Part shown: in pieces, positions 6,365-61,274 of the stretch | How the letters are laid out: every line of letters begins with the position of its first letter | How positions within the stretch are numbered: position 1 is the stretch's first letter | Sequence record: NC_047815.1 | Length of the DNA: 64,000 bases | Strand: one strand, 5' to 3' | Notes under the pieces: generated by a model | The model's input: only the letters and a program-made list of their open reading frames with translations | The model's database searches: none | Told to the model about the DNA's origin: nothing | Made by a program: the position numbers and the translations under genes

Positions 6365-6373
6365 TATTTACAG
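6365..6373 (-). promoter_or_regulatory. CTGTAAATA promoter-like motif
   Basis: Intergenic, upstream of 6333. Confidence 0.55.
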
Positions 6374-6421
6374 ATTCTGTTGAGACTGAGAGGCCTAAGC
6401 AAGACCTCTCATGAAACAAGA

Positions 6422-6793
6422 TTACATCAGGGCTAGGTTTGGATCTACGTATGAAACGTTGTAGACAATAGACCAACCGCTGTCTGTGTTTGCGTTTGGA
6501 ACAATCTGATAATCACGCACAAGGAAGATGCCTTGAGAATCTTCTCCAAGACCGTCGTTGTAGTCTTTGAAGCTCGGACCGCCTTTGATAAGATCAGCAA
6601 TACCTTCAGGCCAGTCATAGTTGCTGTTAACATCAGGCACATCATAAACATGCTGATACATTGGATAGTGACTAAACTGATTGTCAGTATCTTTGGAAAC
6701 CCAATCAAGGTGTTTATAACCAAGACGGGTTGCAACGCTGTCACTGAGACCGTGCTGCTGAGCCAGACGTTGTACTTGATCGATGCGTAACAT
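6422..6793 (-). CDS. Hypothetical 123-aa protein
   Basis: ORF with GAGG RBS; ATAATTT motif at 6824-6830. Confidence 0.7.
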   Translation of the reverse strand: MLRIDQVQRLAQQHGLSDSVATRLGYKHLDWVSKDTDNQFSHYPMYQHVYDVPDVNSNYDWPEGIADLIKGGPSFKDYNDGLGEDSQGIFLVRDYQIVPNANTDSGWSIVYNVSYVDPNLALM

Positions 6794-6873
6794 GTGTTAC
6801 CTCTGTATCGGTGAGTGTTGATCAAATTATACGACACAAATGAAAAGAGCCGGCGTCTGCCAGCTCTATTTGG

Positions 6874-7314
6874 TTACATCTTCATTGTGAGACGCAGCGT
6901 GTTAAGTTGGGTTTCGAGGATACGGAGTTTAGCTTGACCTAGTTGTTCGTAAGCAACAAGGGTCGGGTCAGTCTTGCACAAGGCTTCATACACAACGCGC
7001 ACGCTGTCATCGACCAAGGAGTCAGCAAGCACACGAGGCTTGTCTTGCTCGATGTACTTAGCTACTCGAATGCGGACACAGTTACCGTCTGGTGTACCCA
7101 TCTCAACAACACGGAACTTGGTTCCGTAGTCCGCTAAGATTTCTGAGGCATCGACAACAATACGCACAGGCTCAAAGTGCTGGCGTTGTTTTTCAGCGTA
7201 AGTAAGCGTATACCACTCGCCCTCATCTTCCTCAGCTTGACCTTGCTGTATCTCAAAGTCAGCACGCCACAGTGCTTCAAATACAAGGCGTGGAATATCA
7301 CTTTGTTGAATCAT
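6874..7314 (-). CDS. Hypothetical 146-aa protein
   Basis: Start overlaps the helicase stop codon. Confidence 0.7.
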   Translation of the reverse strand: MIQQSDIPRLVFEALWRADFEIQQGQAEEDEGEWYTLTYAEKQRQHFEPVRIVVDASEILADYGTKFRVVEMGTPDGNCVRIRVAKYIEQDKPRVLADSLVDDSVRVVYEALCKTDPTLVAYEQLGQAKLRILETQLNTLRLTMKM

Positions 7315-8918
7315 TAGAATCTCCTCATACCCAGATTACTCGGTATACCTTTCTTCTGTGGTTCAGGTTCAAAGTAGTCAGGCAGCTCGCCATCAAGCAC
7401 ATCACCTCTCGACACTACACCCATCCAATCACGCAGCTTTTTCGGAGTGCGCTTGGCTTTAGCGTAGTTGAACTCCCAACACATCTTGAGAACTGAACGA
7501 GCAAAGCCCATCGATTTCTCCATACGAGGATCGATGAACATACGAATAACTGGCGTGCGCTTGTCTGCTGCTGGAGTTAAGATACGACATGACTCCTGCT
7601 TCCAGTTTGGCTTGTTGTTCATCGGCATGATATAATACAGCGTATCCCATGCTGGAACGTTCAGCCCGCGCTGCATCAAACGACGCATACCAACAACACA
7701 ACGAATACGACCTTCACGCGCTGCGTCAACAATCGGCTTACGCTTCTTGGCTTCACGCGCACCACCAAGGAACACGGCAGCAATCTCTTCACCATAATGC
7801 TCATTGATACGACGCACAAGATCACGCGCTTGTTCAGTGAACATGATTGGAATAACAAGACTGCGACCTGCATCGAGATCACGAATAATCCACTCAAATA
7901 TCTTGTCGTTGCGATCAGGATGATTAGCAAGGAACTTACAGAAACGCATCCAACCACTCTTGTTGTTGTAGTTCGCTTTGTTGAACACTTTGTTCGAGGT
8001 CTTGTGAATCGTAACCTTCGGACGCAGCTCTTTAACATATGCTTTAGCAACAACAGGTCCCATCACCGATTCAACAATCCAGTGCTTGCCGTCTTTACGT
8101 TTCGGAGTTGCTGTCAGACCATAACGAAACTTCATGGTAAGGTTGGCAAGCGTTCGGCTAAAACACGCGGCATTTGCAGCATGAACCTCATCTACGAATA
8201 TCGTACCGAAGTTATCATTCAACAGTTTCATGCGTTTGCGTGCTTGCTTGTTATCCCCAATCAACGATTGATACGTGATCAGGATGATCTGAAAGTTTTC
8301 GTAATCAACATCTTTCTTCGGAAAGCCAAACAGTTTCTTGCCTGTCTTTTCTTCAAGGTCAGGCAAGTTGGTCATCTGCTCAATCGTTTCATAGAAGCCA
8401 TCAAGAAAGTCTTTCTGGTCAGCCATGATGATTGTCTTGTAGCCTGTCTCAATAGCACCAGCAGTACCCATAACAGTCTTGCCGCTACGAGGCGGTGCTT
8501 GCAAGAGTCCACTCAGTTCGCCTAACAGATCGGCAAACGGTTCTTCCTGATAGTCACGAAGTTTGCTTGTGAACTTAACAGGGTAATCATATTTAACGCG
8601 ACTGGTGTTGTTGATGAACTTACAGTTCTTTGTCTTCAACCCTGTCGTTTCTTCAAAACGATGCAACTCACCATACGGAATTGAAACGCAACGCTGGCCT
8701 TTCTTGTCGGTCAACTTTGCAAGCACGGTGATATCCAGCAGACCGCCTTTGGAACATGATCGACATTCCTCACTCGGTCTGACAGACTTGAACTCACAGT
8801 TCTTACACACTGCATTTTCGAACTCGTACTTGGTCAGCTTTTTGATGATAGACGGCGCATCAACAACCTTGATAGGTATATGAATGCGGCTATCAACAAT
8901 TACCTTCGGCTTGGCCAC
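7314..8918 (-). CDS. SF2 DNA helicase, UvsW/Rad25-like (534 aa)
   Basis: LRDYQ Q-motif, PPRSGKT, VDEVH, LTATP, RGLNVP; N-terminal CxxC..CxxC. Confidence 0.9.
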   Translation of the reverse strand: MAKPKVIVDSRIHIPIKVVDAPSIIKKLTKYEFENAVCKNCEFKSVRPSEECRSCSKGGLLDITVLAKLTDKKGQRCVSIPYGELHRFEETTGLKTKNCKFINNTSRVKYDYPVKFTSKLRDYQEEPFADLLGELSGLLQAPPRSGKTVMGTAGAIETGYKTIIMADQKDFLDGFYETIEQMTNLPDLEEKTGKKLFGFPKKDVDYENFQIILITYQSLIGDNKQARKRMKLLNDNFGTIFVDEVHAANAACFSRTLANLTMKFRYGLTATPKRKDGKHWIVESVMGPVVAKAYVKELRPKVTIHKTSNKVFNKANYNNKSGWMRFCKFLANHPDRNDKIFEWIIRDLDAGRSLVIPIMFTEQARDLVRRINEHYGEEIAAVFLGGAREAKKRKPIVDAAREGRIRCVVGMRRLMQRGLNVPAWDTLYYIMPMNNKPNWKQESCRILTPAADKRTPVIRMFIDPRMEKSMGFARSVLKMCWEFNYAKAKRTPKKLRDWMGVVSRGDVLDGELPDYFEPEPQKKGIPSNLGMRRF

Positions 8919-8920
8919 TT

Positions 8921-9469
8921 TTATTTCCTTGAGTTCGGTATGTTAAACTCACGCTGGTTGATGATGTTCAAGGTGTCTACCATCGACTTGAAAGCAAACC
9001 CTGCTTTATCAATGTCTTTGATATACAGTTCAATCTCATCAATCAACAACGACAGGTCATCGCTGTACTTGTAGTAGGCGGACATAACGTTGCGGACAGC
9101 GCGTTCACGCTCTTTGGCTGCACCTAATGCTTTGAGATCACGCGCGTAAGTAACTGTGGCATAATCTTGAAAGCGGTCAAGCGTATCATCGAGGAGTTTC
9201 TTGGCTGTCTTTACAGTTGCCAGTATCTCTGTCATGCGACTACGATACGATTGATCCTGAACAATGGACTCAGCCAGTTTGTTCAGTGACTTAGGATTCG
9301 CATCAAGCGTCAGCGTTCTAACTTTGCGCATTGAAAACAAGTTGCGCGCCTCTGACTGATATTCAGCAACAGGCAGTTGGAACATGCTGTTTGTCTTAAA
9401 CAAATTACGAACGTTCTTGTAACGCTTGTCTTCCTTGATCTTGAGACGAATACGTTTCACGTCATCCAT
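8921..9469 (-). CDS. 182-aa helical protein, possible UvsY-like recombination mediator
   Basis: C-terminal DIDKAGFAFKSMVD resembles T4 UvsY DAIKSRGFAIKHIQD; adjacent to the UvsW-like helicase. Confidence 0.4.
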   Translation of the reverse strand: MDDVKRIRLKIKEDKRYKNVRNLFKTNSMFQLPVAEYQSEARNLFSMRKVRTLTLDANPKSLNKLAESIVQDQSYRSRMTEILATVKTAKKLLDDTLDRFQDYATVTYARDLKALGAAKERERAVRNVMSAYYKYSDDLSLLIDEIELYIKDIDKAGFAFKSMVDTLNIINQREFNIPNSRK

Positions 9470-9903
9470 TAATCACCTCTGTCCGAGATAAGCAATGGGC
9501 TGCTTGGCACTTTAGCTGGCGTGGCATAGAAGCAGCCATGCCCATCATTGTACACGAGTAAGCCACCAGACTGAGCTTCGGTCGGGCATACGAAAGTTGT
9601 TATCTTGTCTTGTGGTGGCATATAGCCTACACCAAGATTGCTAAACTTACACCAACGAGCACTGATATCCAGCAAGCTACCTACAACGTTATCAGCAAGA
9701 CGCAGATAGCTTTGATTAAAGTGATGGCTATGACTGATTGGTGCAACAGTATCAACACGAAGCTGGTGGCCGTAGATTGGTTTGTTTACAAGCACAAACA
9801 TGCGACGACCACGAGGAGCTTCTATCTCATGCAAAAAATCTTGCATAAGGTTAGAAAGGTCGCCCAAGAGCAACCCTTTCTTTACACGAAATGGATGAAT
9901 CAT
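9469..9903 (-). CDS. Hypothetical 144-aa protein
   Basis: ORF overlapping both neighbours. Confidence 0.65.
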   Translation of the reverse strand: MIHPFRVKKGLLLGDLSNLMQDFLHEIEAPRGRRMFVLVNKPIYGHQLRVDTVAPISHSHHFNQSYLRLADNVVGSLLDISARWCKFSNLGVGYMPPQDKITTFVCPTEAQSGGLLVYNDGHGCFYATPAKVPSSPLLISDRGD

Positions 9904-11078
9904 GCAGGCAGATATCCGAAGTACAACAGCGTGTCGCCGTCAAACTTATAGTTGAGACTGAACGCTTTCAGATTCTTGATGCTTGAACCATGAAAGCCCA
10001 TAGCATGACGTTCTTCACGTCCAATGTTCTTCAACATTTCACGGACGATACGCATGTCCATCATTGTTGCAATCTCTTTCTCGACGGGTTTACCCAGCGT
10101 CAAACTGTCTTGCACACTACCACTATCGTTACCGAACTTGATACGGAACTCTTTCTTCTTGATCAAGATATGCGCATTGGTACCGCCTTTCTTGTCAAGC
10201 AGAGTTGCAATGTTTGTGAATGGTGCTTGCAGGTCACCTTTAACAACAACACCCACCAGCGGATTACCGAGTTGCGCCAGCATGTTATCGATAAAGCGGT
10301 AGTCTTCGTCGTTCGCCTGAATCGGAGGCAAGGTAAGAACAAAGCTATCGGACTCTGCTGCAAACGAACTGCTGTCAACGTGAAAGTTAACACGCTCTTC
10401 CGCACAGAACTTGCTGACCAAATCAAACATTTCTGAGGTCAAGCTGAAACGGAACTTGTCGGTCTGCTTCTGCAACGGTGCGATGTAACGAGCCGACGTC
10501 CAGTTTCCAGGACTCTGCACGCGAATATCTTTGCCGGTACATTCAACACGACAGATAACAGTTGACGCTGTGATTGGGTCTTTCAGTCGAGCATAACGAA
10601 TGCCTGTGGTCATCTTGTCGATAACTTCACGCGACATTTCATGACCGCCTTTGATATGGTGACGCAGACCTTCTTCAACCATCGGAATCTGTTCTTCCGA
10701 AAGCTGGCGCACTTTAAAGTCAGACTTGTACTTGCCTGTCTTGGCAGTCATCTGAATCATCTTGCCATCAAACGCAAGGTCGAGTTGACCACGCTTGTTG
10801 ATCAGACCAGCAAGCTGAATAGGATCGATGTTGAATACGGTGTCGCGATCTGCTGTAGCACCAGCAACGTGATACGCTACAAACGTATCTGGAGTACGAC
10901 CCAGCACAAACACATCTGAATCATACGTTACCATAAGATGAATGTGAGTTAGCTTATCCGCGCTCTCACTAAATCGAGTAACACTATCTACACGTTTCAA
11001 AATGTCAGACAGAATATTGCCGTCTAACGAAATCGCACAACTAGGACTAATCTTTTTGGGAAGTCGGCATTTCTTCAT
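9900..11078 (-). CDS. dnaN: DNA polymerase sliding clamp, beta-subunit-like (392 aa)
   Basis: Size and three-domain alternating beta/alpha pattern resemble DnaN; located next to the polymerase; highly divergent. Confidence 0.6.
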   Translation of the reverse strand: MKKCRLPKKISPSCAISLDGNILSDILKRVDSVTRFSESADKLTHIHLMVTYDSDVFVLGRTPDTFVAYHVAGATADRDTVFNIDPIQLAGLINKRGQLDLAFDGKMIQMTAKTGKYKSDFKVRQLSEEQIPMVEEGLRHHIKGGHEMSREVIDKMTTGIRYARLKDPITASTVICRVECTGKDIRVQSPGNWTSARYIAPLQKQTDKFRFSLTSEMFDLVSKFCAEERVNFHVDSSSFAAESDSFVLTLPPIQANDEDYRFIDNMLAQLGNPLVGVVVKGDLQAPFTNIATLLDKKGGTNAHILIKKKEFRIKFGNDSGSVQDSLTLGKPVEKEIATMMDMRIVREMLKNIGREERHAMGFHGSSIKNLKAFSLNYKFDGDTLLYFGYLPA

Positions 11079-11340
11079 CTTTTTTCTCTGTTATGAATTG
11101 TAACTGACCTTCGATATTTACAGCTTTAATCGACTGTCCTGTGGAGGCGAATAGTCCATTCAACACTCCGAGAAAATCTGCAACGCAACAGCCTGATGAT
11201 GTGCTGAATACGTCAATGTCTGGCGGCACATCGCCTGGGTTAAGCTGCCAGCAAGTACGCAAGACAGCTAACACAAAGTCAGGACGATGCACCAAGTGCG
11301 TGTTGAGAAAGTCACACGCTTGCTCGGTGCTTATTGTCAA
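11047..11340 (-). CDS. Hypothetical 97-aa protein
   Basis: Overlaps the polymerase stop and the clamp start. Confidence 0.6.
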   Translation of the reverse strand: MTISTEQACDFLNTHLVHRPDFVLAVLRTCWQLNPGDVPPDIDVFSTSSGCCVADFLGVLNGLFASTGQSIKAVNIEGQLQFITEKKDEEMPTSQKD

Positions 11341-14300
11341 TTGAGATAACCTCTTACGGCTTTCTTAACAATACTTTTAGGAATCTTGATCTTCTTCTTG
11401 GCAGGCGCTGAGACTGCTGTTGCGGCTGCGGCTTTCTTGGCACGCTCTTCCGCTTCGAATGCCTCATACTTGGCCGTATTATCAGGAAGTTCACGATGCC
11501 ACTGCTTGATATTCTTCTGATCAAGTTTCGTCAGTGGATTCACTTTGTCCATGCTGCGAATCTTGATGTTGTTAGCCCACAGTTGCTTCTTCATCCAATC
11601 GGACATTAAGCTGTACTGGTTTTCCATGATGCTGTCAAGAACCTGCTCAACATCAAGGTCTTTCTCACCAAGCTCGTCACGCTTCTGCTCCAGACCTTTC
11701 TGAATCAGTTTACGCAGCTTCGCATACGAGAAGTCCCAGCCACCAACATCTTTCTCTGATGCACCGATTTCAAAATCAATCTCAGGCACAGAGGTAAACT
11801 CGAACCCATGACGCTCTTTAACTATCTGCACAACGGCTGAGGTCATCGCACGCTCAATCATATCAAGCGCAAGGAATATCCAGTCGTAAGCACAGTCTAC
11901 GGTTAAGGAGTCATGTACAGATACGTTAAGCGCAAAGTCAGGATATTTACCATTCGCTTTCCAGTATTCGTACTTCATACGGTCAAGAATACGAATAGCC
12001 GACATCATCAAGTCAGAACCAAATCCCTGCACTGGACTGTTTACTGCACGACGATCACAGGCTGCATGAACCATGTTTGCTTCACGATGCGACTCAGGCA
12101 CCATAAAGCCCCACAGATGACGACGACGACCAACTGGTGATTCTACGTAATAGTGTTCATGAGCAAAGCGTTTGATCTTCTCAAACCACTTCAAGCCGAT
12201 TGGGAAACGTTTAAGGAACTTCGCTTTAATGTCAGCTATCTCCTCAACTTCACGTCCCGTTGACTTCGCAAGACCTTTATCACCTTGCTGATAGATAAGA
12301 CCAAAGATTACCGTTTTAACCGCGTTACGAATCGGCTTGGTAACTTCCATGATCGGAACACCGAAGAAGTAACTAGCGTTAATCTTGTGAACGTCACCTT
12401 CAATATCAACAAGGTGGTGAATCCAAGGATCAGGCACAGTACGATAACGGTGGCGCAAGCGACGACCAACTTCAAACACTTCTGCAACTTCTGCGTCTCC
12501 ACTGATGATTGACCAACCACGAACTTCGTGTGCTGAGTAGTCGACCTTGATAAGCAAGCGTCCAGGACGCGCAATCAAGATACGTTTAATCAACTTGCCC
12601 AGTTCACTACGGCTAGGCACCTGCTGTAAATTTGGATCAGATGCAGATGTACGACCTGTCACAACTCCGAGATAACTATACGTCGGTCGGATTGAACGGT
12701 CATGCTTGAAGTCTTCTGACTCACCCCACAGTCTAAGCAAACTGTTTACGTAAGCATTCTTTAGCTTGTACGCTTTGCCCAGCTTGTTGTACAACGACAC
12801 CAGTGGAACATCTTTGTACGCCTCTTGGAAGTCTTTATCGAGCTTACCCGTCGGCTTACCGTTGTCGCGCTTCTTCTCACCTTCTTTCAGCGGCTTGAGC
12901 TTCATCACATCAAAGAACAGGACTTGTTTGTGCTCGTTCTTTGACATATCAAACTTGGTTACTTCGACTCTTCCCATCAGACCAAACTTAGGCACATCAT
13001 CATCTACCAAGATAGCTTTGTTTGCTGCTTTAACTTCTGGACTGTTCAGGAAGTCACGCTCAACGTTTTTGATTTCTTCGTTGATTGGACTGTTCGGCAG
13101 GTTCAGTTTAAACAGATAATCAATATCTGCCATCGCACCTGTCGTTTCCATAATTGAGAACGCATGAATCTGGTCTGAGATTTGTTCCGAGACCATACTG
13201 TTGTACTTGGCGTACTTGATATCCTTCGCACGTTTAACTTGCTGCTCGGCAATCAAGAACGGAACGATAACGTCAAGTCCAGCATATTCTTGAACTGATT
13301 CGTCAAGGTCAACGTCTGCGATTGTCGCACGTTTCTCTTTACCGAACGTCACGTCATAATAAACAGTCGTTCCATACTGCATCGCAAGGTTAGCCAAGTT
13401 ATAATAACCATGACCAAACAATGTCATCAAGTTCTTTGCATTCTCGTCAAACGCAAACTCACCTGCCTGAATATCCCACACGTTAGCAGCATAACTACGA
13501 ATACCAAAGTTAGATCGCAACACGTTCAGGTCGAACTTGGCGTTTACGTAGATCTGATACTTGTTCTGGTTTTCTTCAAAGTAATCACGCATCAGGTCAC
13601 TGATCTTGCGCAACTCCTTAGGACTGAACGGGCTATCACGATGATAGATAGGAATAACATAGGCTGTCTTGCCGTCTGAGGACAACTGAACGGTCATCAA
13701 TTTGTTCTTGATTCGGTTCAAGTTCTCTGTTTCTGTATCGACTGCGACCTTCTTCGCTTTCTTCATCATGCGCAGAACTTTCTCTACGCCTTTGATTGTC
13801 GTTACATACTTGAGATTCCAGTTACGGTTCTTGCCGCACGTTACTTGAGGAATACGGTACGGCATTCCTTTCTGAAACATAGGCAACATCCAGCGCGACA
13901 TATAACCCAGCGTGTAGCTTGTGCCTTTGATGTTACGTGGATTCAGCACTGCGTTGTAGCTCACGTTTGGAACATGAACAAACTTGTGCTTGCCGTTTTT
14001 GGTCTTGAGTGAGGTTGGAATCTCAACACCATACCAGTTATGCGCAAGTCCACCGCTGTAGTTGATCTTGTCAGCGTTGAGTGCCTTAAATGGTTCTGTG
14101 CCAAACGTCATTACATAATCAGGCTTATACTCAACGATCATATCACGAATGCGTTGGCTAAATGCTTCTGCCGCATCTGACTTGTACTGTTCAGACTTTT
14201 CATAGGTCTTGAACATGTTGTAGCTTACAACAAGGAAGTTCCAGTCATCAATCGTTGTCTTGAGTGGAAACACATCTTCAAGATACTGAATCTGATTGAG

Positions 14301-14498: not shown

Positions 14499-14541
14499 AC
14501 AGTAAGCCCTTATGTTCGGTGTGAGATATAAATCACATTTG

Positions 14542-14550
14542 TATTTACAG
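14542..14550 (-). promoter_or_regulatory. CTGTAAATA promoter-like motif upstream of the polymerase
   Basis: Intergenic exact copy. Confidence 0.55.
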
Positions 14551-14572
14551 TTTCCAAACTGTATGGGAATAG

Positions 14573-14601
14573 AAAAAGGGATAGCCTAAGCCATCCCTTT
14601 A
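14573..14601 (-). terminator. Intrinsic terminator with cUUAGg loop
   Basis: AAAAGGGAUGGC-UUAG-GCUAUCCCUUUU on minus. Confidence 0.75.
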
Positions 14602-14606
14602 GAGTG

Positions 14607-16384: not shown

Positions 16385-16407
16385 GAAGAAAGGGGCCGAA
16401 GCCCCTT
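16385..16407 (-). terminator. Intrinsic terminator with cUUCGg loop
   Basis: AAGGGGC-UUCG-GCCCCUU followed by UCUUC. Confidence 0.75.
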
Positions 16408-16410
16408 ATG

Positions 16411-23946: not shown

Positions 23947-23955
23947 TATTTACAG
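23947..23955 (-). promoter_or_regulatory. CTGTAAATA promoter-like motif upstream of HNH
   Basis: Intergenic exact copy. Confidence 0.55.
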
Positions 23956-23960
23956 TTTTG

Positions 23961-29272: not shown

Positions 29273-29279
29273 AAATTAG
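29273..29279 (-). promoter_or_regulatory. CTAATTT promoter-like motif
   Basis: 39 nt upstream of 29234. Confidence 0.5.
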
Positions 29280-29317
29280 CGTTTAGGTCGGGATATTCAT
29301 GGATTATGTACTGTGTG

Positions 29318-29325
29318 TATTTACA
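29318..29325 (-). promoter_or_regulatory. TGTAAATA promoter-like motif
   Basis: Intergenic, in tandem with CTAATTT. Confidence 0.45.
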
Positions 29326-29345
29326 AATATTCTGACCTAAGACGT

Positions 29346-31301: not shown

Positions 31302-31310
31302 TATTTACAG
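31302..31310 (-). promoter_or_regulatory. CTGTAAATA promoter-like motif upstream of sbcD
   Basis: Intergenic exact copy directly after a terminator. Confidence 0.55.
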
Positions 31311-31336
31311 AAAAGGGCAGCCTAAGCCACCCTTTT
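31311..31336 (-). terminator. Intrinsic terminator with cUUAGg loop
   Basis: AAAAGGGUGGC-UUAG-GCUGCCCUUUU. Confidence 0.75.
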
Positions 31337-34027: not shown

Positions 34028-34036
34028 TATTTACAG
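34028..34036 (-). promoter_or_regulatory. CTGTAAATA motif overlapping the stop codon of the upstream gene
   Basis: Exact copy just upstream of 34020. Confidence 0.45.
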
Positions 34037-34915
34037 AGTTACCTTCTGTTGGGCTGTGAGGAACGTTATGGACTGCCTGGTGCCTGGATCAACACTGGCT
34101 GCAACGTTAAAGTCTGTGCCGCGTGCTAACCTAATATAAATGTTCTTACTCGAAACATAACCCAGAGCAAACTGTAGTGTTACTTTCTCAGCAGTCCTAG
34201 ATGTTGCCAGTTTAGCAGTGTACTTGCCAGGCACAGCTACGGTGCTGTCCGAAACAAAGTTTGATGGACCAACTGTTGGTGAGTAAGGAGCAGCAACATA
34301 ATCTACTTTCTTAGTATTCATAACAGTCAAGACAGGATTGACCGTCACTGTACTCAGCAGGGCACTGAGGCCAGGCCAAGACTTTGAGTAGGTTTGCTTT
34401 GTACTGAATGTTCCGTCAGCGAATGCTTGCCAACCAACATACGTCATCGTGATAGCAGGAAGTATGCCCAAAAGAGGCACTGTATTCTTGATACCAAATG
34501 AAGGCGCTGTTAGTTCCTGACTACTGACCGTGTCCAAAGCACTAGGCCACAGCACAGCAGTAGGTCCAGCAGTTGAGTCGTAAGCATAGTTTGATAGAAC
34601 ACTTGCAAACGGACTTTTACCCCAAGCAACACTGTTGTGAAATATATCCACCAGCTTTGAATATGTCTCACTTCCTTGTGCGTATCGCAACTGTGTTAGG
34701 TAATAAGTTGTTCGCGTTGAGTCTACACCTCTTACAGGATTTGTTGTGCCACTAAAACCTAATGCAGCACGACTATCCCTCAAGATGGAACTCAGGTTGT
34801 TGAGAAGAACATCAGTCTTTTTATTAACGGAGGTGTCAAGCGTTGGGTCAAAGAACAAAAGTTCTCGACACTGATCCGATAAGTCAGACGGTGAGAAGTT
34901 GGTGACAAACTGCAT
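34031..34915 (-). CDS. 294-aa S/T/aromatic-rich protein, paralog of 35012-35893
   Basis: MQFV...ELLFFDPTLD N-terminus and DF.V...PGT C-terminus shared with its neighbour. Confidence 0.8.
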   Translation of the reverse strand: MQFVTNFSPSDLSDQCRELLFFDPTLDTSVNKKTDVLLNNLSSILRDSRAALGFSGTTNPVRGVDSTRTTYYLTQLRYAQGSETYSKLVDIFHNSVAWGKSPFASVLSNYAYDSTAGPTAVLWPSALDTVSSQELTAPSFGIKNTVPLLGILPAITMTYVGWQAFADGTFSTKQTYSKSWPGLSALLSTVTVNPVLTVMNTKKVDYVAAPYSPTVGPSNFVSDSTVAVPGKYTAKLATSRTAEKVTLQFALGYVSSKNIYIRLARGTDFNVAASVDPGTRQSITFLTAQQKVTL

Positions 34916-43167: not shown

Positions 43168-43176
43168 TATTTACAG
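43168..43176 (-). promoter_or_regulatory. CTGTAAATA promoter-like motif heading the sbcC operon
   Basis: Intergenic exact copy. Confidence 0.55.
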
Positions 43177-43191
43177 AATTTTCTCAGCCAG

Positions 43192-45935: not shown

Positions 45936-45968
45936 TGTATGCCCTATTTAGTATATGCTCTCGTATGA

Positions 45969-45977
45969 TATTTACAG
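45969..45977 (-). promoter_or_regulatory. CTGTAAATA promoter-like motif upstream of dnaX
   Basis: Intergenic exact copy. Confidence 0.55.
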
Positions 45978-45995
45978 ATTTTAAGTCCTCAGACG

Positions 45996-46029
45996 AAAAA
46001 ATGGGACAGACCAAATCCATGGCTGTCCC
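45996..46029 (-). terminator. Intrinsic terminator
   Basis: GGGACAG...CTGTCCC with U-run on minus. Confidence 0.6.
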
Positions 46030-46112
46030 TGTATAAAATGTTTACATTCAATGAGCAATAAAGACACAATCCTAGGAAAATCCTAGAGGGCATTCACAGT
46101 GGCAACAGTGAA

Positions 46113-46316
46113 TTAGGCTACAAGCGAAAGTGAAGGTTCTACTCTTGCACTCACACTCGAAAACAGGTTAAACTCTGGTGGCGGGTTCTTGTCGATTCCG
46201 CTAATCAATTTTTCTACTTCTGTATAACTGCGAATGTCAGAACGAACAACGCGAGTTTCAAAGGTTCCATCTGGCCGGATTAAGTCGACCACTACACGGT
46301 AACAACTTCTCAGCAT
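46113..46316 (-). CDS. Hypothetical 67-aa protein
   Basis: GGGAG RBS; CTGTAAATA at 46375-46383. Confidence 0.65.
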   Translation of the reverse strand: MLRSCYRVVVDLIRPDGTFETRVVRSDIRSYTEVEKLISGIDKNPPPEFNLFSSVSARVEPSLSLVA

Positions 46317-46374
46317 TTTAATCTCCCACAGAAGGGACCAACATTGATCCCTGCTTTTTAACTTTGCTGCTCTA

Positions 46375-46383
46375 TATTTACAG
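46375..46383 (-). promoter_or_regulatory. CTGTAAATA promoter-like motif
   Basis: Intergenic exact copy. Confidence 0.55.
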
Positions 46384-46414
46384 AAACAACAAACTTCTGG
46401 GCGTGAGACTATTC

Positions 46415-49840: not shown

Positions 49841-49999
49841 TTAAATTACGACTGTGTAGGAATTGTTTACAGAAACCAGCAAGCGATTCTGGCTGAGACT
49901 TTTCTTAATCTGCTCATAGGCTTCGACCTGATGAGGAAGAAGCATAGGACGGATGTTCTGCAATTGTGGTTGTGTGCGACGACGGCCAGTTGCAGTCAA
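49841..49999 (-). CDS. Possible 52-aa mini-ORF
   Basis: TTG..TAA fills the gap: MTATGRRR...MLLPHQVEAYEQIKKSL...; weak RBS. Confidence 0.35.
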   Translation of the reverse strand: MTATGRRRTQPQLQNIRPMLLPHQVEAYEQIKKSLSQNRLLVSVNNSYTVVI

Positions 50000-52042: not shown

Positions 52043-52051
52043 TACATGTCC

Positions 52052-53710
52052 TCATTCTTTTTCGTAATATTTCGCATATGCTCTATTTACAGTATTCTCT
52101 TGATTGCCAGACACCGTTTTAGACATAATGCATCGTTTGTCGTTCTTGAAGGTGTGGCCATTTTCCCAAACCTTGTCAAACAATCGAATTGCGTCAGTGG
52201 TTGTGCAGAATGGCTTTTCCTCCATATCGATACAATTGTTGTAAGTACCACAAACGATAGCTCCATCAAACTCAGCACTGCACCAAAGATTTTGAGCAAG
52301 CACCTCAAGAAGTTTTTGGCTCTCTCGACCTTGAATGTAATGACTCAAAATCGAATAACGTTCCTTCTTGATTTTAGTGAAGGGTATTTGATACGAACAT
52401 TCAACATCGTTGACAAATGAATAAACCGCATTACGATTGTAGGCTTTTTCGATCAATCGATCAATCAATTGAGATACAATATCCGCCGCAGGTTTATAAA
52501 TACTTTTCCATTTCTGCCATATGCCCAACACATAGGCATTTTGCGCGAGTTCAGTTTGTTTTGGAGAATCAGGTACGATAAGAGATTCGAGAACTTTAAG
52601 AACTTTAGAATCCTTCCACAAGGCTTTGGCCAAAGGTGTTAACACTGATCTGCGGTTGTCACCAATAGACACAGTTATTTTATACTGATTCTGCCAGCCC
52701 TTGTAGATTCCACCAAAGTTTAACGTCTTGGCAGTGTCGCGCGTTACACCTAACGTTTTAGCCAAGTAACCATGATCGATATGAATAGTATCTGGTATTT
52801 CCAGATCGTTTTCTTCAAGAAGTTCTTTGAGAATGGTTATATGAGCCTGACTCATATCATAGTTGGTACCATATGTATGATCAAAACACAAACGCTTAAC
52901 AGGTTTAAGAAATGCCTGACTGATACCAAACATACGACTGCCGACATCGTTGATGTAATACTGGTCATAGAACTCAACGATGCGATCTTTTTCCGTGCCA
53001 CCAACAACTTTGAAGCCAAGCCTAGACGCTCGTTCCAACACAGCCCATAGTTTGGAGTACGCGCTGTGCTTTCCGTGATAGTCGAGGTTTCTCAGACAAT
53101 CTAAGGCTCTATCAAGATAAAATCTGTAAGGACGTTGATTATCAATAGCCCTCTCGATAAGATCTGAAATTTCAGCCTTTCCTCGTCTAAGATTTGCTGG
53201 ACGCACTATACGGTGTTTGATAATCTCAGGCACTATGGAACGTTCAATCAGGTCAGACTTTGATTTAGCCTTAGGTCTACGTCGAAGCCTGACGGTTATA
53301 TCGTATAGAGGTTCATCTACGGTATTAGCCTTACGGAATTTCCGCTCAAATGATGGTTTAAACTGCCATTCTCGACAACGCCCTTTTATATAGTCGAAAG
53401 GCGTTACAATTAATACGGACTCCAGCCAAGCCTGAATTTCAGGATTTTTACGATAAACCAAGGCATATCTAGCAGGATTTCTACTGTCTCGAAACCAATT
53501 GTACGGTACAGGCACTTGATGCTTCATTTTACGTCCAGTAAGACCTGTGCGTTCTGCGATGTGCAGGAACAAGAAGGACAAACTGTCGTAAAATCTATTT
53601 ACATCTGCCCCAATAGGAACAGGGCAGCTTTGAATCGTATCCCAAAATACTTTATGGGCAGACATGGGAACTAAACGCGTCCCACGATAGGCAAAGTTGC
53701 TTTTCTTCAT
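52052..53710 (-). CDS. Divergent family-A-like (PolA/T7-RNAP superfamily) palm-domain protein, ~552 aa, no exonuclease
   Basis: Motif A NYDMSQAH, motif B RDTAKTLNFGGIYKG and motif C AEFDGAIV, in the correct order. Confidence 0.65.
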   Translation of the reverse strand: MKKSNFAYRGTRLVPMSAHKVFWDTIQSCPVPIGADVNRFYDSLSFLFLHIAERTGLTGRKMKHQVPVPYNWFRDSRNPARYALVYRKNPEIQAWLESVLIVTPFDYIKGRCREWQFKPSFERKFRKANTVDEPLYDITVRLRRRPKAKSKSDLIERSIVPEIIKHRIVRPANLRRGKAEISDLIERAIDNQRPYRFYLDRALDCLRNLDYHGKHSAYSKLWAVLERASRLGFKVVGGTEKDRIVEFYDQYYINDVGSRMFGISQAFLKPVKRLCFDHTYGTNYDMSQAHITILKELLEENDLEIPDTIHIDHGYLAKTLGVTRDTAKTLNFGGIYKGWQNQYKITVSIGDNRRSVLTPLAKALWKDSKVLKVLESLIVPDSPKQTELAQNAYVLGIWQKWKSIYKPAADIVSQLIDRLIEKAYNRNAVYSFVNDVECSYQIPFTKIKKERYSILSHYIQGRESQKLLEVLAQNLWCSAEFDGAIVCGTYNNCIDMEEKPFCTTTDAIRLFDKVWENGHTFKNDKRCIMSKTVSGNQENTVNRAYAKYYEKE

Positions 53711-53740
53711 CAATACTCGCTTTTGCTCTTTCTTGTTGGT

Positions 53741-53748
53741 TATTTACA
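53741..53748 (-). promoter_or_regulatory. TGTAAATA promoter-like motif
   Basis: Upstream of 53710. Confidence 0.5.
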
Positions 53749-54210
53749 CTTTCCTTGCAGATAACCAACTATAGGGAGTATCAATACGGTATAAGTCTCT
53801 ACTTCTAGCTCTCTCAACCATCATCATATCAGGCATATATCAGTCAGATCAGCGTGAGCATGAGCCACTTTGGGTCACAATAAATAGCAAAATCAGACCG
53901 AGTAGAATCGCACGCTGGTAGCTTCTAACATAGCCGATAGGTGCATAGAATTCAAATCCATGCAAAAAATGAATTATATAGCAAATCGTGTCCGCAATAA
54001 GGTATTTCGATCCGCGCTATACCTGTGGAGCGTATAGGGACACCGCTGGTCGATAATCGTAAGGTTGAGAATTGCTAAAAACAGCTAAAAATCGACGATT
54101 TCTCAGGGATTGCAATTCTAATCGCCTGACGGGCGCCTACAAGCATGTCCTGCGGGCGCCTAAAATCCATGATTTTCAGACAAATCTCACCGTATTTTCA
54201 ACGGCGAAGA
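53749..54210. other. Long non-coding region with direct and inverted repeats (origin or packaging-site candidate)
   Basis: AAATCG-A-CGATTT palindrome 54089-54101; CGGGCGCCTA at 54130 and 54153; GCTAAAAA twice (54074, 54084); AGAATTGC/GCAATTCT inverted pair. Confidence 0.35.
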
Positions 54211-54903: not shown

Positions 54904-54911
54904 GTTGCCCT

Positions 54912-56018: not shown

Positions 56019-56039
56019 ACAGTTCTCCTCTAGTGTTCA

Positions 56040-56046
56040 AAATTAG
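56040..56046 (-). promoter_or_regulatory. CTAATTT promoter-like motif
   Basis: 22 nt upstream of 56018. Confidence 0.5.
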
Positions 56047-56136
56047 TGAGTATATTTTCGCATTCGCACCTCACAATAGTTATTTATCTGAGTCAAAACT
56101 ATTACGCCCAAAAAGCCAATACAGTGGAGTGTTTTT

Positions 56137-56685: not shown

Positions 56686-56694
56686 GGAAACCGT

Positions 56695-56994
56695 ATGGTC
56701 AACGACGCACGCATCGCTGAGTTTTTATCAGAGTATGCAAAACAAACGGTCATGCTACAACACGGTAACATGCCTTCCCAGCCTGTAACAGAGACTGAGA
56801 TCAAGTTTGTGTCGAACAGGACTGAGCATGATTTTGAACGTAAGTTTTTATCAGAGCTAGCTCGTCAATGTGAAATGCGAGGTATTACAGGCAAGATTGA
56901 AAAAATCTATCATCGCCCGGTGTCAAGCGTTCCTATCGACGACACACGTAGCCTGACCCAAATCATGATCGGTTTTTCTTACGGTCTAGCCTGA
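56695..56994 (+). CDS. Hypothetical 99-aa protein
   Basis: AGGGA RBS; follows ruvC. Confidence 0.65.
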   Translation: MVNDARIAEFLSEYAKQTVMLQHGNMPSQPVTETEIKFVSNRTEHDFERKFLSELARQCEMRGITGKIEKIYHRPVSSVPIDDTRSLTQIMIGFSYGLA

Positions 56995-56998
56995 AATT

Positions 56999-57007
56999 CT
57001 GTAAATA
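56999..57007 (+). promoter_or_regulatory. CTGTAAATA promoter-like motif (plus strand)
   Basis: Orientation flips with gene direction; upstream of 57048. Confidence 0.6.
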
Positions 57008-57047
57008 GGCCATAGATAAACTTATCTGTAAATCACAGGATTTATTT

Positions 57048-57674
57048 ATGGTTGCTACAAAACAGCGTCAACAGAAAATACAAGTTACGGTCTTACAGGA
57101 TAACAGGCCGATTAACATCTGTCCTGAGCTGGAAAACAGTTCGGAACCCTTTCGCTTTCGTGGTCAGTGTCCTGTAACGCGTTGTCAGTATTGCACGCGT
57201 GCTACGGAGACTGGTTGTATGTCGCTTGATCGTCGTGAGTCGGCAGACAAGACAATTAGCCACAAAGAGATTGCGTACTACAAGAAAGGTCTGTTTCCCG
57301 AACTGCGTGAGTGTGACAACAAGCAATTGGACACCATGATCCGCCAAGCACAGACTCGTGCTAAGGCCGCTGTTGCACTAAGCAGTTACCTCACATCACT
57401 TGATGACAGTGACTGTGACAAATCTTTTGTTTATGTGGTTGGCAAACATCCAATGGTAGATCAGGTCCATAACTACTTGAGCCAGACCTTAGATGGGTAT
57501 CGCGTTTGGATGCTTGCTTATCTTGACGACACACAGCTCTTTCGTCAAACCGTACGTCGCATCGCCGACATTGAAATCCAATTAGGATCAACGCTGCGTC
57601 TCACTCCCAAGAAGTATTTGGGATTCTGTGCTGCGCTGAAAAAACTTAAACAATCTGGAGATAAAAATGGCTGA
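57048..57674 (+). CDS. Hypothetical 208-aa protein with Cys-rich N-domain
   Basis: CPE...CPVTRCQYC...C. Confidence 0.75.
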   Translation: MVATKQRQQKIQVTVLQDNRPINICPELENSSEPFRFRGQCPVTRCQYCTRATETGCMSLDRRESADKTISHKEIAYYKKGLFPELRECDNKQLDTMIRQAQTRAKAAVALSSYLTSLDDSDCDKSFVYVVGKHPMVDQVHNYLSQTLDGYRVWMLAYLDDTQLFRQTVRRIADIEIQLGSTLRLTPKKYLGFCAALKKLKQSGDKNG

Positions 57675-59397
57675 GATTACGCTGGAGCAATATAAGGAGT
57701 TGCTGTCGCGCAACGTTCTTAATGAGCCTGCATTCATCGTATCTAATCGCACCGTTCCGCAAGGCGATATCGGATTTCAAGTGTTGGGTGAAAACCTGAA
57801 AATGAAATCTGTCATCATTCCTGCTGGTGTTGGTAACTTTGATCTGACTCACCTTGCACCACTTGCTCATCTGCTTGCGTCAAGCGATATTAAAGCACTG
57901 CTGGACAAGCGCATGATCGCACTGATGAATCCTGGTGATATGCCTGAGCCATCAAAGACAATCGATCAGCCAACAATCGATCCAGCAGTAGAAGGCTCGA
58001 CTGTGGTTACTGGTACAACTGTGCCAAACGCCACTGTGTTTGTTATCCAAGGCGACAACACCTGGCGCTCAACTTCAGATTCATCAGGTCGCTTCTCAGT
58101 TCCTGTAAGTGGTCTGGTCGAAGGTGAATATCGTGTGCTGGTAAATGCTGATGGTTACGCTGGTCGTGAGTTCACGTTTACTGCTGGCGCACGCCCGAAT
58201 CAAGATTATCCATTAGTTACTAACGTTCAGGGTGAATATCGTGGCACGCATATTACGGGCACCACAGTTCCTAACGCCGATGTTTCTGCTACTTTTGACG
58301 GCAAGTCCTTTGACGATACTGCCGACAGCAACGGCGCGTTTGACATTACGACCGACCCATTACCATTCCAGCCTGTCACTCTGACTTTTGCTGCGGATGG
58401 CTACAACACGCATGAACAGCAATTCACTCCTGCTCAGATCAGCATGGCCAATTTAAGCATTGATACTCCTGCTTACTTTGACACAGAGATCTCAGGCAGT
58501 GCAGAACCTGAATCCGTTGTTACTGTAGCTCCAGACGGTCAGCAAGAAGTCACTGCCGATGTTGCAGACAACGGTGACTACACCGCCACCATTCAGCCTC
58601 TGCGTGGTGCTGTTAAAGTCTATGCTAACGCTGCTGGTTTCCGTCAGACAGAAACTACTGCACAGCCTAATCGTCAAGTGCTGGGCAACATCACTGTCAA
58701 CAGCGTTGCAGATACCGACACAGAAGTATCTGGTAACGTTGCTGACGTTAATCCTGCCGCCAACGATCTGACCATTGAAGTCGTAACTCAGAACGGCCAA
58801 GTGAATGGTACTGTTGCTGCCGATGGTTCGTTCATCGTTCAGGGTGTTGACCTGACCAAAGGTACAACTGGTACTGTGACTATCAAGTCTGCGGAATACG
58901 AAGACAAACAGCAGCAGTTCTCTATCCTGCAATCGTTTGATACCTTCACCGTAAATCAGCTTGACGAAGGTCAGCCTGTAACGGGTAACACTGTTGCGAA
59001 TACTAATATCACATTGACACAGGGTGAAAACACCGCTAGTGGTTCAAGCAACGCACAAGGTGCATTCAGCATCAATCTGACCAACGCGCACAGCGGTCCA
59101 GTAGATGTAGCTCTGAGCCGTAACGGTTACGTGCCTGAAAACTTGCAGGCCCAGCTTGTGGTTACTGTGTTGCTTGACGTTGACGCGTTTGCTATCGGTG
59201 CTACATCAGTCACTGGTAACGCAACGCCAAACGCCACTGTTGAGTTTGTTCAAGATCAGAACACGGCTCAGGCAGTTGCAGACACTGACGGTGAGTTCAC
59301 TATCACCCTAACCGATCCGACTGTTGCGGGTAACTATACCGTTACTGCTACTCTCGAAAACTTTGAAGCACGTTCTGCTTCTGGCACTTTGGCTTAA
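57667..59397 (+). CDS. Ig-like repeat virion decoration protein (576 aa, about six repeats)
   Basis: Repeats (V/I)(T/S)G(T/N)(T/A).P(N/E)..V of about 75 aa with DS.G.F.I motifs; N-domain shared with the next gene. Confidence 0.8.
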   Translation: MAEITLEQYKELLSRNVLNEPAFIVSNRTVPQGDIGFQVLGENLKMKSVIIPAGVGNFDLTHLAPLAHLLASSDIKALLDKRMIALMNPGDMPEPSKTIDQPTIDPAVEGSTVVTGTTVPNATVFVIQGDNTWRSTSDSSGRFSVPVSGLVEGEYRVLVNADGYAGREFTFTAGARPNQDYPLVTNVQGEYRGTHITGTTVPNADVSATFDGKSFDDTADSNGAFDITTDPLPFQPVTLTFAADGYNTHEQQFTPAQISMANLSIDTPAYFDTEISGSAEPESVVTVAPDGQQEVTADVADNGDYTATIQPLRGAVKVYANAAGFRQTETTAQPNRQVLGNITVNSVADTDTEVSGNVADVNPAANDLTIEVVTQNGQVNGTVAADGSFIVQGVDLTKGTTGTVTIKSAEYEDKQQQFSILQSFDTFTVNQLDEGQPVTGNTVANTNITLTQGENTASGSSNAQGAFSINLTNAHSGPVDVALSRNGYVPENLQAQLVVTVLLDVDAFAIGATSVTGNATPNATVEFVQDQNTAQAVADTDGEFTITLTDPTVAGNYTVTATLENFEARSASGTLA

Positions 59398-59412
59398 TCA
59401 GTTTAAACTCTC

Positions 59413-59431
59413 AAGGGCTGTCATGGCCCTT
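59413..59431 (+). terminator. Short hairpin terminator
   Basis: AAGGGC-TGTCATG-GCCCTT. Confidence 0.45.
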
Positions 59432-59458
59432 TAAAACTAAATATTCTGGAGAATTACC

Positions 59459-60109
59459 ATGGGCGTTAAAGTAAAACCGATTACGTTAAACACGTACATT
59501 GACAGCTACGACATTTCAAAGGCACCGAGCCTGTTCGTTGTTAACCGCACCAACCCTCTGGGCGACATTGCGTTTAACTGTATCAATGACATGGGACAGC
59601 AGACTGCCGTTATCATTCCGGCAACTACTATCCCAATCGATCTGACCACTCAGGTCCCTGCTGATCTGTTGATTCGCAGCAGCTACTTCAAGCGTGTGTT
59701 GGAAAAATCGCGTGCGCGTATCATTACTACTGAATCCGCAGAGGCGTATATTGCAGACAGCCCGCGCTATCAGGAAGAATACAATCGCGTTAACAAGATT
59801 GATCAGGACGCGCGTGCTGGTGTGGGCGATCTGGAGAACGATGAAGAGATCGATCTGGATATGGGCAGCCGTGGCAAGCGTAGCATCAAACATGAAAACG
59901 AAGACGTATCTTCCAACATGTTTGTTAACGCATTCATTGAGCGTTGCAACGGCGATGACTACGATGACCATGCGCTGGAAGCTGAGTTCCTGAACAAAGG
60001 TCTCAACCTGCCAGTTAAAGAACTGCGTACCTTGTTGAAGTATGTTAACCGTCAAATCATTCGTGATCTGATTGTTGAAGCTATCAACGACGCAGAAGAA
60101 CCAGTTTAA
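59459..60109 (+). CDS. 216-aa protein, N-domain paralogous to the Ig-repeat protein
   Basis: NRTNPLGDIAF...VIIPA...DLT...SS.FK..LEK. Confidence 0.8.
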   Translation: MGVKVKPITLNTYIDSYDISKAPSLFVVNRTNPLGDIAFNCINDMGQQTAVIIPATTIPIDLTTQVPADLLIRSSYFKRVLEKSRARIITTESAEAYIADSPRYQEEYNRVNKIDQDARAGVGDLENDEEIDLDMGSRGKRSIKHENEDVSSNMFVNAFIERCNGDDYDDHALEAEFLNKGLNLPVKELRTLLKYVNRQIIRDLIVEAINDAEEPV

Positions 60110-60111
60110 AT

Positions 60112-60150
60112 AAAAAAGGGAGGCCCCGTAATGAGGTCTCCCTTTTGTTT
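60112..60150. terminator. Bidirectional terminator between convergent genes
   Basis: AAAAAAGGGAGGCC...GGTCTCCCTTTTG. Confidence 0.8.
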
Positions 60151-61222
60151 ATGCCGCACGCCTTTTCTTTTTACTAACTGCTTTCTCAGCAGGCTTTCTG
60201 TTCCAGCCTAAACGTTTAGCAGGAATCAAACAACCTTTACCATATTTGTCACGCAGCACTGATTTCACTTCACGTATGATTTCAATCGGACAGTTATCTG
60301 GGTCTAGTTTGATCAACTTACCTTTATCATCTTTCTCACGAGGAAGTTTGAAGTGCTTTGATTTAAGACCGCTTGCACGAAACGCTTCATCAATCTTGCC
60401 GCGCAACAGTTTACCACCACCATCGTTATCAGTCATGGTATACACAGTACCGATATCAAGCATTTCAATTGAGCGAACTTTTGTTGAACCGAACTGCTCT
60501 GCACCCAACACAGCAAGAGCTGGAATGCCATACGACAACAAAGCAAGCGCATCACGAGGACCTTCAACAAGCACAACATAACGCAGCTTGTATTTGCGAA
60601 TCATCTTGCGTGTCAACTCAATCGGGAACAAGCCTTTATCTTTTGCCCAATCACCTTGTGAGTTTATATAGCTGGAGCCGTTCATCTGTTTAGACAGATA
60701 AGCAGCGACACCACCTATATATTTTGAACCATGCTTGCACGGAAAGAAACATACGTTTGAACCGGTACGCTGTGCATTCAACAGGCCACCAGCATCTTGC
60801 ACAAGTCTGCCTGGATAACCGCGCCACTCAACATCTTCTGGCCACTGCATGTAACTTGAACGACCGAGTGCTTTCATCAACAACGCTACTGATGCATAGG
60901 TACCAACTCGATTGCCAATCTTTTCATATGTCTGACGCAGCGCAGACAGCGAGTTTGTTCCAGCATCTTTTAACTTCCAGCCTTTGATGACTGCAAGACC
61001 TGCGTGCTCTGCAAGCTGATTCCAGTTGCCTCGAACACCACAACCAAAACAGTGATAAAACCCTAAAGGTATTTCCATACCAACTGATGTATAGATACCA
61101 CAGCTTGGTGTTTTATCGTGGTGAAACGGACAGCAGACCATCACTGTGTCACCATTATACTTCTTATCACCAGGCAGTTTGCCGATCTCTTCTATGATCG
61201 TCTGGTGAACGTCTTCGGACAT
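60149..61222 (-). CDS. dnaG: DNA primase (CHC2 zinc finger + TOPRIM), 357 aa
   Basis: CCPFHHDKTPS...HCFGCG; LVEGPRDAL; TDNDGGG. Confidence 0.9.
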   Translation of the reverse strand: MSEDVHQTIIEEIGKLPGDKKYNGDTVMVCCPFHHDKTPSCGIYTSVGMEIPLGFYHCFGCGVRGNWNQLAEHAGLAVIKGWKLKDAGTNSLSALRQTYEKIGNRVGTYASVALLMKALGRSSYMQWPEDVEWRGYPGRLVQDAGGLLNAQRTGSNVCFFPCKHGSKYIGGVAAYLSKQMNGSSYINSQGDWAKDKGLFPIELTRKMIRKYKLRYVVLVEGPRDALALLSYGIPALAVLGAEQFGSTKVRSIEMLDIGTVYTMTDNDGGGKLLRGKIDEAFRASGLKSKHFKLPREKDDKGKLIKLDPDNCPIEIIREVKSVLRDKYGKGCLIPAKRLGWNRKPAEKAVSKKKRRAA

Positions 61223-61238
61223 ATTGTCACCCGTTTGT

Positions 61239-61245
61239 CTAATTT
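61239..61245 (+). promoter_or_regulatory. CTAATTT motif (plus strand)
   Basis: 46 nt upstream of 61292. Confidence 0.5.
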
Positions 61246-61265
61246 AAACATGTACACTTAGGCGA

Positions 61266-61274
61266 TATTTACAG
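61266..61274 (-). promoter_or_regulatory. CTGTAAATA motif upstream of primase
   Basis: Exact copy in the divergent intergenic region. Confidence 0.55.

Follow-up and report, generated by a model that had tools for sequence, protein, structure and literature searches.

How does a jumbo phage in which no RNA polymerase gene can be detected switch on its replication genes? The question is raised by a 64,000-nucleotide stretch of DNA (the window) that corresponds, at 100% identity, to bases 124001–188000 of the 259,700-bp genome of Erwinia phage vB_EamM_Yoloswag (NC_047815.1), a jumbo myovirus of the Lu11/PaBG ('Lupandier') group (PMC7412058; PMC6143709). A short A/T-rich box with the core CTGTAAATA, hereafter the class A box, stands repeatedly just ahead of replication and recombination genes in this stretch. 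The Yoloswag record lists 333 coding sequences (CDS) and, across its whole length, no regulatory features. Full-text literature searches with motif and phage terms found no paper with experimental data on the box, and no public RNA runs containing Yoloswag were found, the only matches being DNA metagenomes in which it has a small share. Box positions are window coordinates unless marked as genome coordinates.

We conclude from the motif and its context that the box very probably serves as a phage-specific middle promoter, and that a factor encoded by the phage probably reads it. The reading as a whole, namely a single-box promoter class served by host core polymerase that a phage-encoded factor redirects, we hold at a probability of about two in three. 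The sequence aAAA(t/a)CTGTAAATA would then be the core of a one-box, −10-like promoter with no −35 element, heading replication, recombination and nucleotide-metabolism genes in Yoloswag and in the whole Lu11/PaBG jumbo clade; transcription would start about 7 nt downstream of the box, at middle times. The early step would use sigma70-type promoters, with −35 and −10 elements and an upstream box, GGTCAAAA, the middle step the CTGTAAATA promoters, and the late step, for virion genes, (G)CTAATTT promoters. Host core RNA polymerase would be redirected to the class A box by a phage specificity factor, the candidates being gp237, a sigma70-like protein in which no domain 4 is recognisable, and gp333, a sigma-like protein resembling the extracytoplasmic function (ECF) type.

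Sequence and placement of the box

The window contains 15 copies of the word TGTAAATA; dinucleotide shuffles give 1.80 ± 1.19, and none of 100 reaches 15. The genome contains 34, where a third-order Markov model predicts 6.5. In the window, fourteen copies lie on the minus strand; the other, at 57000 within the short plus-strand gene block, lies on the plus strand. Each follows the local gene direction, and genome-wide 33 of 34 copies are co-oriented with genes (P = 2e-9). Thirty of the 34 precede a start codon by no more than about 100 nt, mostly by 13–83 nt (P about 3e-32), the chance baseline being the 6.3% of strand-positions that fall within 100 nt upstream of a start. With counts, strand and placement all far above expectation, we reject a chance origin of the box.

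By the CDS table of the record, 11 of the 15 window copies fall between genes, one spans a stop codon and three are coding. Two of these three occupy the last bases of the upstream gene, 36–41 nt before the next start, and across the genome the copies in coding sequence are likewise mostly found at the extreme 3′ end of the upstream gene.

These results largely bear out a first-pass annotation of the window, made from its letters, which had described the motif as heading replication and recombination genes, oriented with them and mostly intergenic, and had proposed a genome-wide count as a check. All 13 positions that it listed are present, most of them as exact copies; those at 29318 and 53741 have the cores TTGTAAATA and GTGTAAATA, without the 5′ C, and that at 49864 is a TGTAAACA variant. 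Copies at 11115 (before gp167), 52084 (before gp213) and 53596 were absent from its list.

Alignment of 31 sites gives the full box as aAAA(t/a)CTGTAAATA, with the 5′ C present in 29 of them. No −35 element accompanies it, the information content being at most 0.25 bit at each position from −45 to −7, as the first-pass annotation had judged by eye. A purine stands 7 nt past the box in 26 of the 31 sites, as expected of a start site, which would place the hexamer TAAATA at −12 to −7. Comparison of single-base variants indicates that TGTAAA is strict and the final two bases looser; the variants TGTAAACA, TGTAAAGA and TGTAAATT are also found upstream of genes in the genome, and every functional-looking site has G at position 2. 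Scanning the genome with a position-weight matrix (PWM) yields about 40 sites. Consensus sites of the host sigma70 type are not enriched in the window (21, against 27.2 expected), and the class A box departs from that type both in having no −35 element and in its hexamer, which ends in A.

Terminators and a divergent spacer

A terminator-like hairpin followed by a T run precedes the copies at 14542, 29318, 31302 and 43168, in agreement with the earlier remark that several copies directly follow terminators, and an imperfect hairpin precedes the copy at 45969. The divergent genes for primase (gp222) and gp223 are separated by a 69-bp spacer (61223–61291) that must hold two promoters. It contains exactly one CTGTAAATA, facing primase (class A box TAATACTGTAAATA, 61266..61279, minus strand, 43 nt before gp222), and exactly one CTAATTT, facing gp223; the two are back to back on opposite strands, 12 bp apart. 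The spacer is thereby a compact natural test template for both kinds of box.

The same features bear on whether the word might function in the transcript, as an RNA-processing site or an element of the 5′ untranslated region, and not as a promoter. Its fairly fixed distance to start codons (median ~35 nt) would suit a leader element, but several copies directly follow terminators, and the copy in the divergent spacer is unreachable by any upstream transcript, which, with one box for each gene, is a strong argument against such a role. Nor is any conserved RNA structure associated with the word, and tRNA and Rfam scans gave no matches in the window or in the gene-free stretches that follow some boxes. 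We regard an RNA-level role as highly improbable and reject it on these three grounds.

Conservation in related phages

The core CTGTAAATA is found 31 times in pEa_SNUABM_5 (SNU5), 31 times in Y3 and 16 times in JA11, against 1–2 occurrences of a reversed control, with the same strand pattern. When the 34 Yoloswag sites were looked up at the orthologous genes of these three phages, the box was found at a similar distance before the genes for polymerase, clamp loader, primase, ligase, SbcD, HNH endonuclease, methylase, single-stranded DNA-binding protein (SSB) and the sigma protein. In spacer alignments with the three relatives it is the sole conserved island besides the ribosome site, the flanks having diverged. 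Enrichment of the core over the control extends to NCTB (20 against 0), Lu11 (25 against 2) and PaBG (7 against 2), and to the distant phages PhiXhv-15 of Xanthomonas (18 against 4) and Lauda of Pseudomonas putida (8 against 2); it holds in every relative tested, down to 24% identity of the sigma protein. The median distance from box to start codon is 35–50 nt in all seven phages. Position, strand, conservation before orthologues and the 69-bp divergent region are the reasons for attributing promoter behaviour to the box.

The idea has a precedent among these phages, the box having been predicted before within the clade. The GenBank record of Lu11 (JQ768459.1) annotates 16-nt regulatory features as 'putative middle/late promoter'; these read CTGTAAATA or CTGTAAATG after AAAA, and one of them precedes the SSB gene that neighbours the sigma gene. 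Lu11 and Yoloswag agree in the core CTGTAAAT(A/G), the AAAA 5′ flank, the placement before genes, the clade and the sigma family (34% identity). They differ in that the features are annotated in Lu11, as predictions with no mapped start, whereas the Yoloswag record carries none. Judged by its sequence and A-rich flank, its placement and orientation, its retention before orthologous genes and the presence of a phrog_17569 sigma protein in the phage, the Yoloswag box belongs to this Lu11-type CTGTAAATA promoter class, itself a predicted class. The TAATTT class, described below, is unmarked in the Lu11 record within the stretch of virion genes that was examined.

Three proposed classes of promoter

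The genes that follow a class A box encode DNA polymerase, clamp loader, primase, NAD ligase, SbcD, the SbcC operon, HNH endonuclease, a DprA/SLOG-like protein, SSB, Dam methylase, ParB and many small proteins of unknown function. Virion genes are almost devoid of it and carry a different one. This class B box reads (G)CTAATTT or GTAATTT and is found ~30 nt ahead of the start codons of the major head gene, both tail sheath genes, the portal operon and others. TAATTT has 60 copies in the genome, 35 of them upstream of genes and in the sense direction; class B boxes in the window are at 1018, 3500, 25661, 29273, 33524, 44571, 49843 and 56040 on the minus strand and at 61240 on the plus strand. 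No −35 element was found for this box either, and its enrichment extends to all seven related phages. We regard (G)CTAATTT as a candidate late promoter. Class A and class B boxes stand in tandem before some genes, and even overlap (CTGTAAATACTAATTT), as at 13830–13850 of the genome and 29273–29331 of the window, which suggests expression of these genes in the middle and late phases alike.

A third class, likely early, has ~10 copies, confined to the plus strand from 207.9 to 251.0 kb of the genome (207928–250983). In each, 29 nt separate GGTCAAAA from a following (TG)nTAyaaT, and a TwGcAA box stands where a −35 element would be expected. The class is likely a host sigma70-type promoter with a phage-specific upstream element. 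The early box is common only to Yoloswag and its closest relative, pEa_SNUABM_5. The class A and class B boxes, on the other hand, are the top upstream words in most of the related genomes and, like the two families of sigma-like proteins, are present in all relatives tested.

Knowledge of the early class helps in judging whether the class A box could be a target of the host sigma70 holoenzyme after remodelling by, or with help from, a phage activator that is not a sigma factor. The middle promoters of T4, which depend on MotA and AsiA, are a precedent for activator-aided sigma70; many early genes of Yoloswag have no known function, and the box, with TG followed by TAAATA, is loosely like an extended −10 element. 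Its TG is, however, one base out of register and it has no T at −7, nor does it look anything like the sigma70-type early promoters of the phage itself. The box is also unchanged across phages of Erwinia, Dickeya, Pseudomonas, Xanthomonas and an unknown marine host, whereas the early box differs even between close relatives, and no non-sigma activator was identified. We consider this explanation unlikely, less so than action at the RNA level.

Candidate specificity factors

No RNA polymerase gene is annotated in Yoloswag, and a scan of the genome with the Pfam family RNA_pol_Rpb1_2 was negative. With no detectable polymerase of its own, the phage would depend on host core polymerase, redirected to the box by a phage factor. 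Two proteins encoded outside the window are candidates for this role.

The first, gp237 (genome 191891–192925, 344 aa), matches phrog_17569 (E = 8e-169) and no other sigma PHROG, and has homologues in 81 phage records. Compared with the PDB, its family profile finds regions 1.2–2.4 of RpoD (E = 8e-6); the alignment retains the Y..WW melting residues, and the residues that contact position −12 are changed (Q437 to N, R441 to C). The AlphaFold2 (AF2) model, with a predicted local distance difference test (pLDDT) score of 83, superimposes on region 1.2, the non-conserved region and domain 2 of sigma70 (VIA) with a Z score of 15.4 and a root-mean-square deviation of 3.3 Å over 222 residues. Residues 236–289 are disordered and residues 291–341 form three helices, for which no structural match was listed in the search with the whole model. 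As judged from profile and model, gp237 is a sigma70-family protein in which only domain 2 is recognisable; in this it resembles gp55 of T4, and such a protein suits one-box promoters. Its neighbours (gp240–gp245 and gp236) gave no Pfam or PHROG support for a second sigma factor.

The second candidate, gp333 (genome 258097–259236), is annotated as hypothetical and belongs to phrog_19229, a family with 139 representative metagenome clusters. In its model (pLDDT 92), residues 157–236 resemble domain 2 of sigma70 (Z 7.5 for 157–234) and residues 290–379 domain 4 of SigA (Z 6.3), both middling scores within the range of chance helical matches. The top Foldseek hits are to the ECF factor SigH, again at a middling level (E = 0.3), no Pfam hit was obtained, and comparison with the profile of the gp237 family gives a probability of only 26%. 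It is the orthologue of PaBG gene 112, for which HHpred similarity to sigma factors has been reported with a probability of 97% (PMC7412058). On these structural resemblances gp333 may be a second sigma factor.

The gp237 gene is itself preceded by a class A box, as a TGTAAAGA variant in Yoloswag and as exact copies in three relatives, an arrangement that a cascade, from box to sigma factor to late box, fits as well as autoregulation. One possibility is that gp237 reads the class A box and activates its own gene. Its membership of the sigma70 family without a recognisable domain 4 would agree with a box that has no −35 element, the altered −12-reading residues with the altered upstream half of the −10 element, and the box before its gene with the fact that alternative sigma factors often autoregulate; motif and protein family co-occur, moreover, down to the 24% identity given above. 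In the phage cascades of T4 and SPO1, however, a sigma factor is made one phase before the phase it controls, and by this precedent the target of gp237 would be the late TAATTT box. Within its strand block the gp237 gene has no early-type promoter ahead of it, and gp333 co-occurs with the motif equally well. The first-pass annotation had proposed a replication promoter dependent on a phage sigma factor; a phage-specific one-element promoter and an encoded sigma factor are indeed found, but that gp237 is the reader strikes us as doubtful, if perhaps the least doubtful of the specific assignments.

The alternative is a two-step cascade in which an early factor, with gp333 as the leading candidate, would read CTGTAAATA and so switch on the replication genes and gp237, which would then read TAATTT. 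It would account for the presence, in every relative tested, of both a pair of conserved non-host boxes and a pair of conserved sigma-like proteins, and the position of gp333 suits an early product: in Yoloswag and pEa_SNUABM_5 the last early-type promoter is found ~7 kb upstream of the gene, in the same orientation, and in Y3 and PaBG a TGnTAyAAT site heads the operon that contains it. The sigma2-like and sigma4-like parts of gp333 and the HHpred result for its PaBG orthologue point the same way. Its structural scores, on the other hand, are those that chance helical-bundle matches also reach, the profile comparison and Pfam search described above lend it nothing, a domain 4 would predict use of a −35 element that the box does not have, and a class A box lies upstream of the gp333 operon too. 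A clade-wide cascade of this form, with gp333 early and gp237 late, seems to us a tentative proposal, slightly less probable than reading by gp237 itself.

Several considerations weigh against the preferred reading of the box as a promoter for redirected host polymerase. That it acts as a promoter, and at middle times, is something we infer. The Pfam scan is insensitive, having also missed the weak Sigma70_r2 match, and a very divergent phage polymerase is possible. The gp237 gene and the gp333 operon are both downstream of a class A box, which leaves neither candidate cleanly before the box in a cascade. TAAATA does not have the T at −7 that a sigma70-type domain 2 normally needs; TAATTT fits the A−11/T−7 geometry better and could be the true target of gp237. 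The assignment of gp333 as a possible sigma factor rests on model-based scores of middling size (Z 6–8), and with both families present in every relative tested, co-occurrence cannot separate gp237 from gp333.

Box sites in the window

The remaining sites are given here in order of position; all are on the minus strand except one. Class A box AGAATCTGTAAATA (6365..6378; PWM score 21.7) lies 31 nt before gp161 (206 aa, annotated 'DNA polymerase'), the orthologues of which in SNU5, Y3 and JA11 have a related box ahead of them. Box TAAAGCTGTAAATA (11115..11128), inside the 3′ end of the small gene gp168, is 36 nt before gp167 (392 aa, annotated 'DNA polymerase III') and is identical, and at an equal distance, in SNU5. 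Box GGAAACTGTAAATA (14542..14555), following its terminator hairpin, is 43 nt before the DNA polymerase gene gp169, where it forms the conserved island in an alignment of four phages, and CAAAACTGTAAATA (23947..23960) is 29 nt before the HNH endonuclease gene gp175.

The variant AATATTTGTAAATA (29318..29331), with the TTGTAAATA core, follows a terminator 83 nt before gp180, and the class B box at 29273 lies between the two. Box CTTTTCTGTAAATA (31302..31315) abuts a terminator 30 nt before gp182, an SbcD-like nuclease, and TAACTCTGTAAATA (34028..34041) is only 7 nt before gp184, a SLOG/DprA-like protein. After a further terminator, AAATTCTGTAAATA (43168..43181) is 43 nt before gp197, the first gene of the operon that includes the SbcC gene gp195. 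The top PWM score belongs to AAAATCTGTAAATA (45969..45982), 33 nt before the clamp loader gene gp202, and TGTTTCTGTAAATA (46375..46388) is 58 nt before an unannotated 67-aa open reading frame (46113–46316).

Towards the end of the window, GGTTTCTGTAAACA (49864..49877) is a weak variant (PWM score 10.4, TGTAAACA core) 50 nt before the peptidase gene gp208, to which the class B box at 49843 is closer. Box GAATACTGTAAATA (52084..52097) is inside the 3′ end of gp214, 41 nt before gp213. The TGTAAATA copy at 53596..53603, also inside gp214, has neither the A-rich flank nor the C and is 1.5 kb from the next start; it is probably a chance occurrence. The variant GGAAAGTGTAAATA (53741..53754), with the GTGTAAATA core, is 27 nt before gp214 (552 aa). 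The sole plus-strand copy, again AAATTCTGTAAATA (56994..57007), is 40 nt before gp219.

Most of the gene names in the first-pass annotation stand: gp169 is a polymerase, gp175 an HNH protein, gp182 a Metallophos/SbcD-like protein and gp222 a primase. The SbcC gene, gp195, is two genes downstream of its box, and gp202, which had been called dnaX, is a clamp loader matching DNA_pol3_delta2. The name 'PolA-like' for gp214 was not supported, since this protein has no Pfam hit and the record of a relative calls it a helicase.

Some boxes border stretches with no annotated gene. One of 480 nt (45936–46414) contains the tandem class A boxes at 45969 and 46375 and has no tRNA or Rfam match. Another, of 500 nt (53711–54210), is upstream of the 53741 box between gp214 and gp215, with a similar gap in relatives. 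Elsewhere in the genome, two top-scoring class A boxes are followed by gene-free DNA, of ~650 nt before gp112 in one case (genome 79367, minus strand) and of ~250 nt before gp330 in the other (genome 255244, plus strand). The latter two stretches, for which Rfam gave no match, could hold unannotated small genes or non-coding RNA.

Implications

Yoloswag is a fire-blight phage with no regulatory annotation, and the boxes provide a usable map of its likely transcription units. One short box is kept across a large jumbo clade with different hosts, alongside two sigma-like proteins, and the clade is well suited to asking how jumbo phages that have no polymerase time their genes. The box, being short and sharply defined, is easily tested by reporters and in vitro transcription.

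Comparison with other phage systems

The general idea of a phage sigma factor acting on a one-box promoter is familiar. In phiEco32 the ECF-type phage sigma factor gp36 brings host core polymerase to a promoter of middle and late genes that consists of one −10-like box. Yoloswag would be alike in its one-box, −10-like promoter and in the use, presumed here, of a phage sigma factor on host core polymerase. It differs in the sequence of the box and in the sigma protein, which is unrelated, and where phiEco32 has one sigma factor for both classes, Yoloswag has two boxes and two candidates. Jumbo phages that have no RNA polymerase encode conserved sigma homologues, presumed to read phage-specific promoters (PMC13282480); Yoloswag is alike in this respect, the likeness to the sigma cascades of that review being one of principle only.

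The closest resemblance in sequence is to the late promoter of T4, TATAAATA, which is read by gp55 together with gp33 and the sliding clamp gp45 (PMC1524935). Both are single 8-bp A/T-rich, −10-like boxes with no −35 element, differing at one of eight positions, and both systems would combine host core polymerase with a phage sigma-family protein in which no domain 4 is recognisable, which for Yoloswag is presumed. The first-pass annotation had noted that the box is one base from the T4 consensus and serves a different gene class. The resemblance is real, but membership of the T4 late class we reject: the Yoloswag box has an invariant G at position 2 and a conserved 5′ C and A-tract, TATAAATA itself has three copies in the genome and none upstream of a gene, and the virion genes carry TAATTT. 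The difference in gene class holds, the class A box heading genes of DNA metabolism and not virion genes. The proteins differ as well, gp237 having 344 aa and sigma70-like regions 1.2–2 and matching no sigma PHROG other than its own. If the two-sigma cascade were true, it would be a T4-like logic built from unrelated parts and shared by phages from Erwinia to Pseudomonas, Xanthomonas and the sea.

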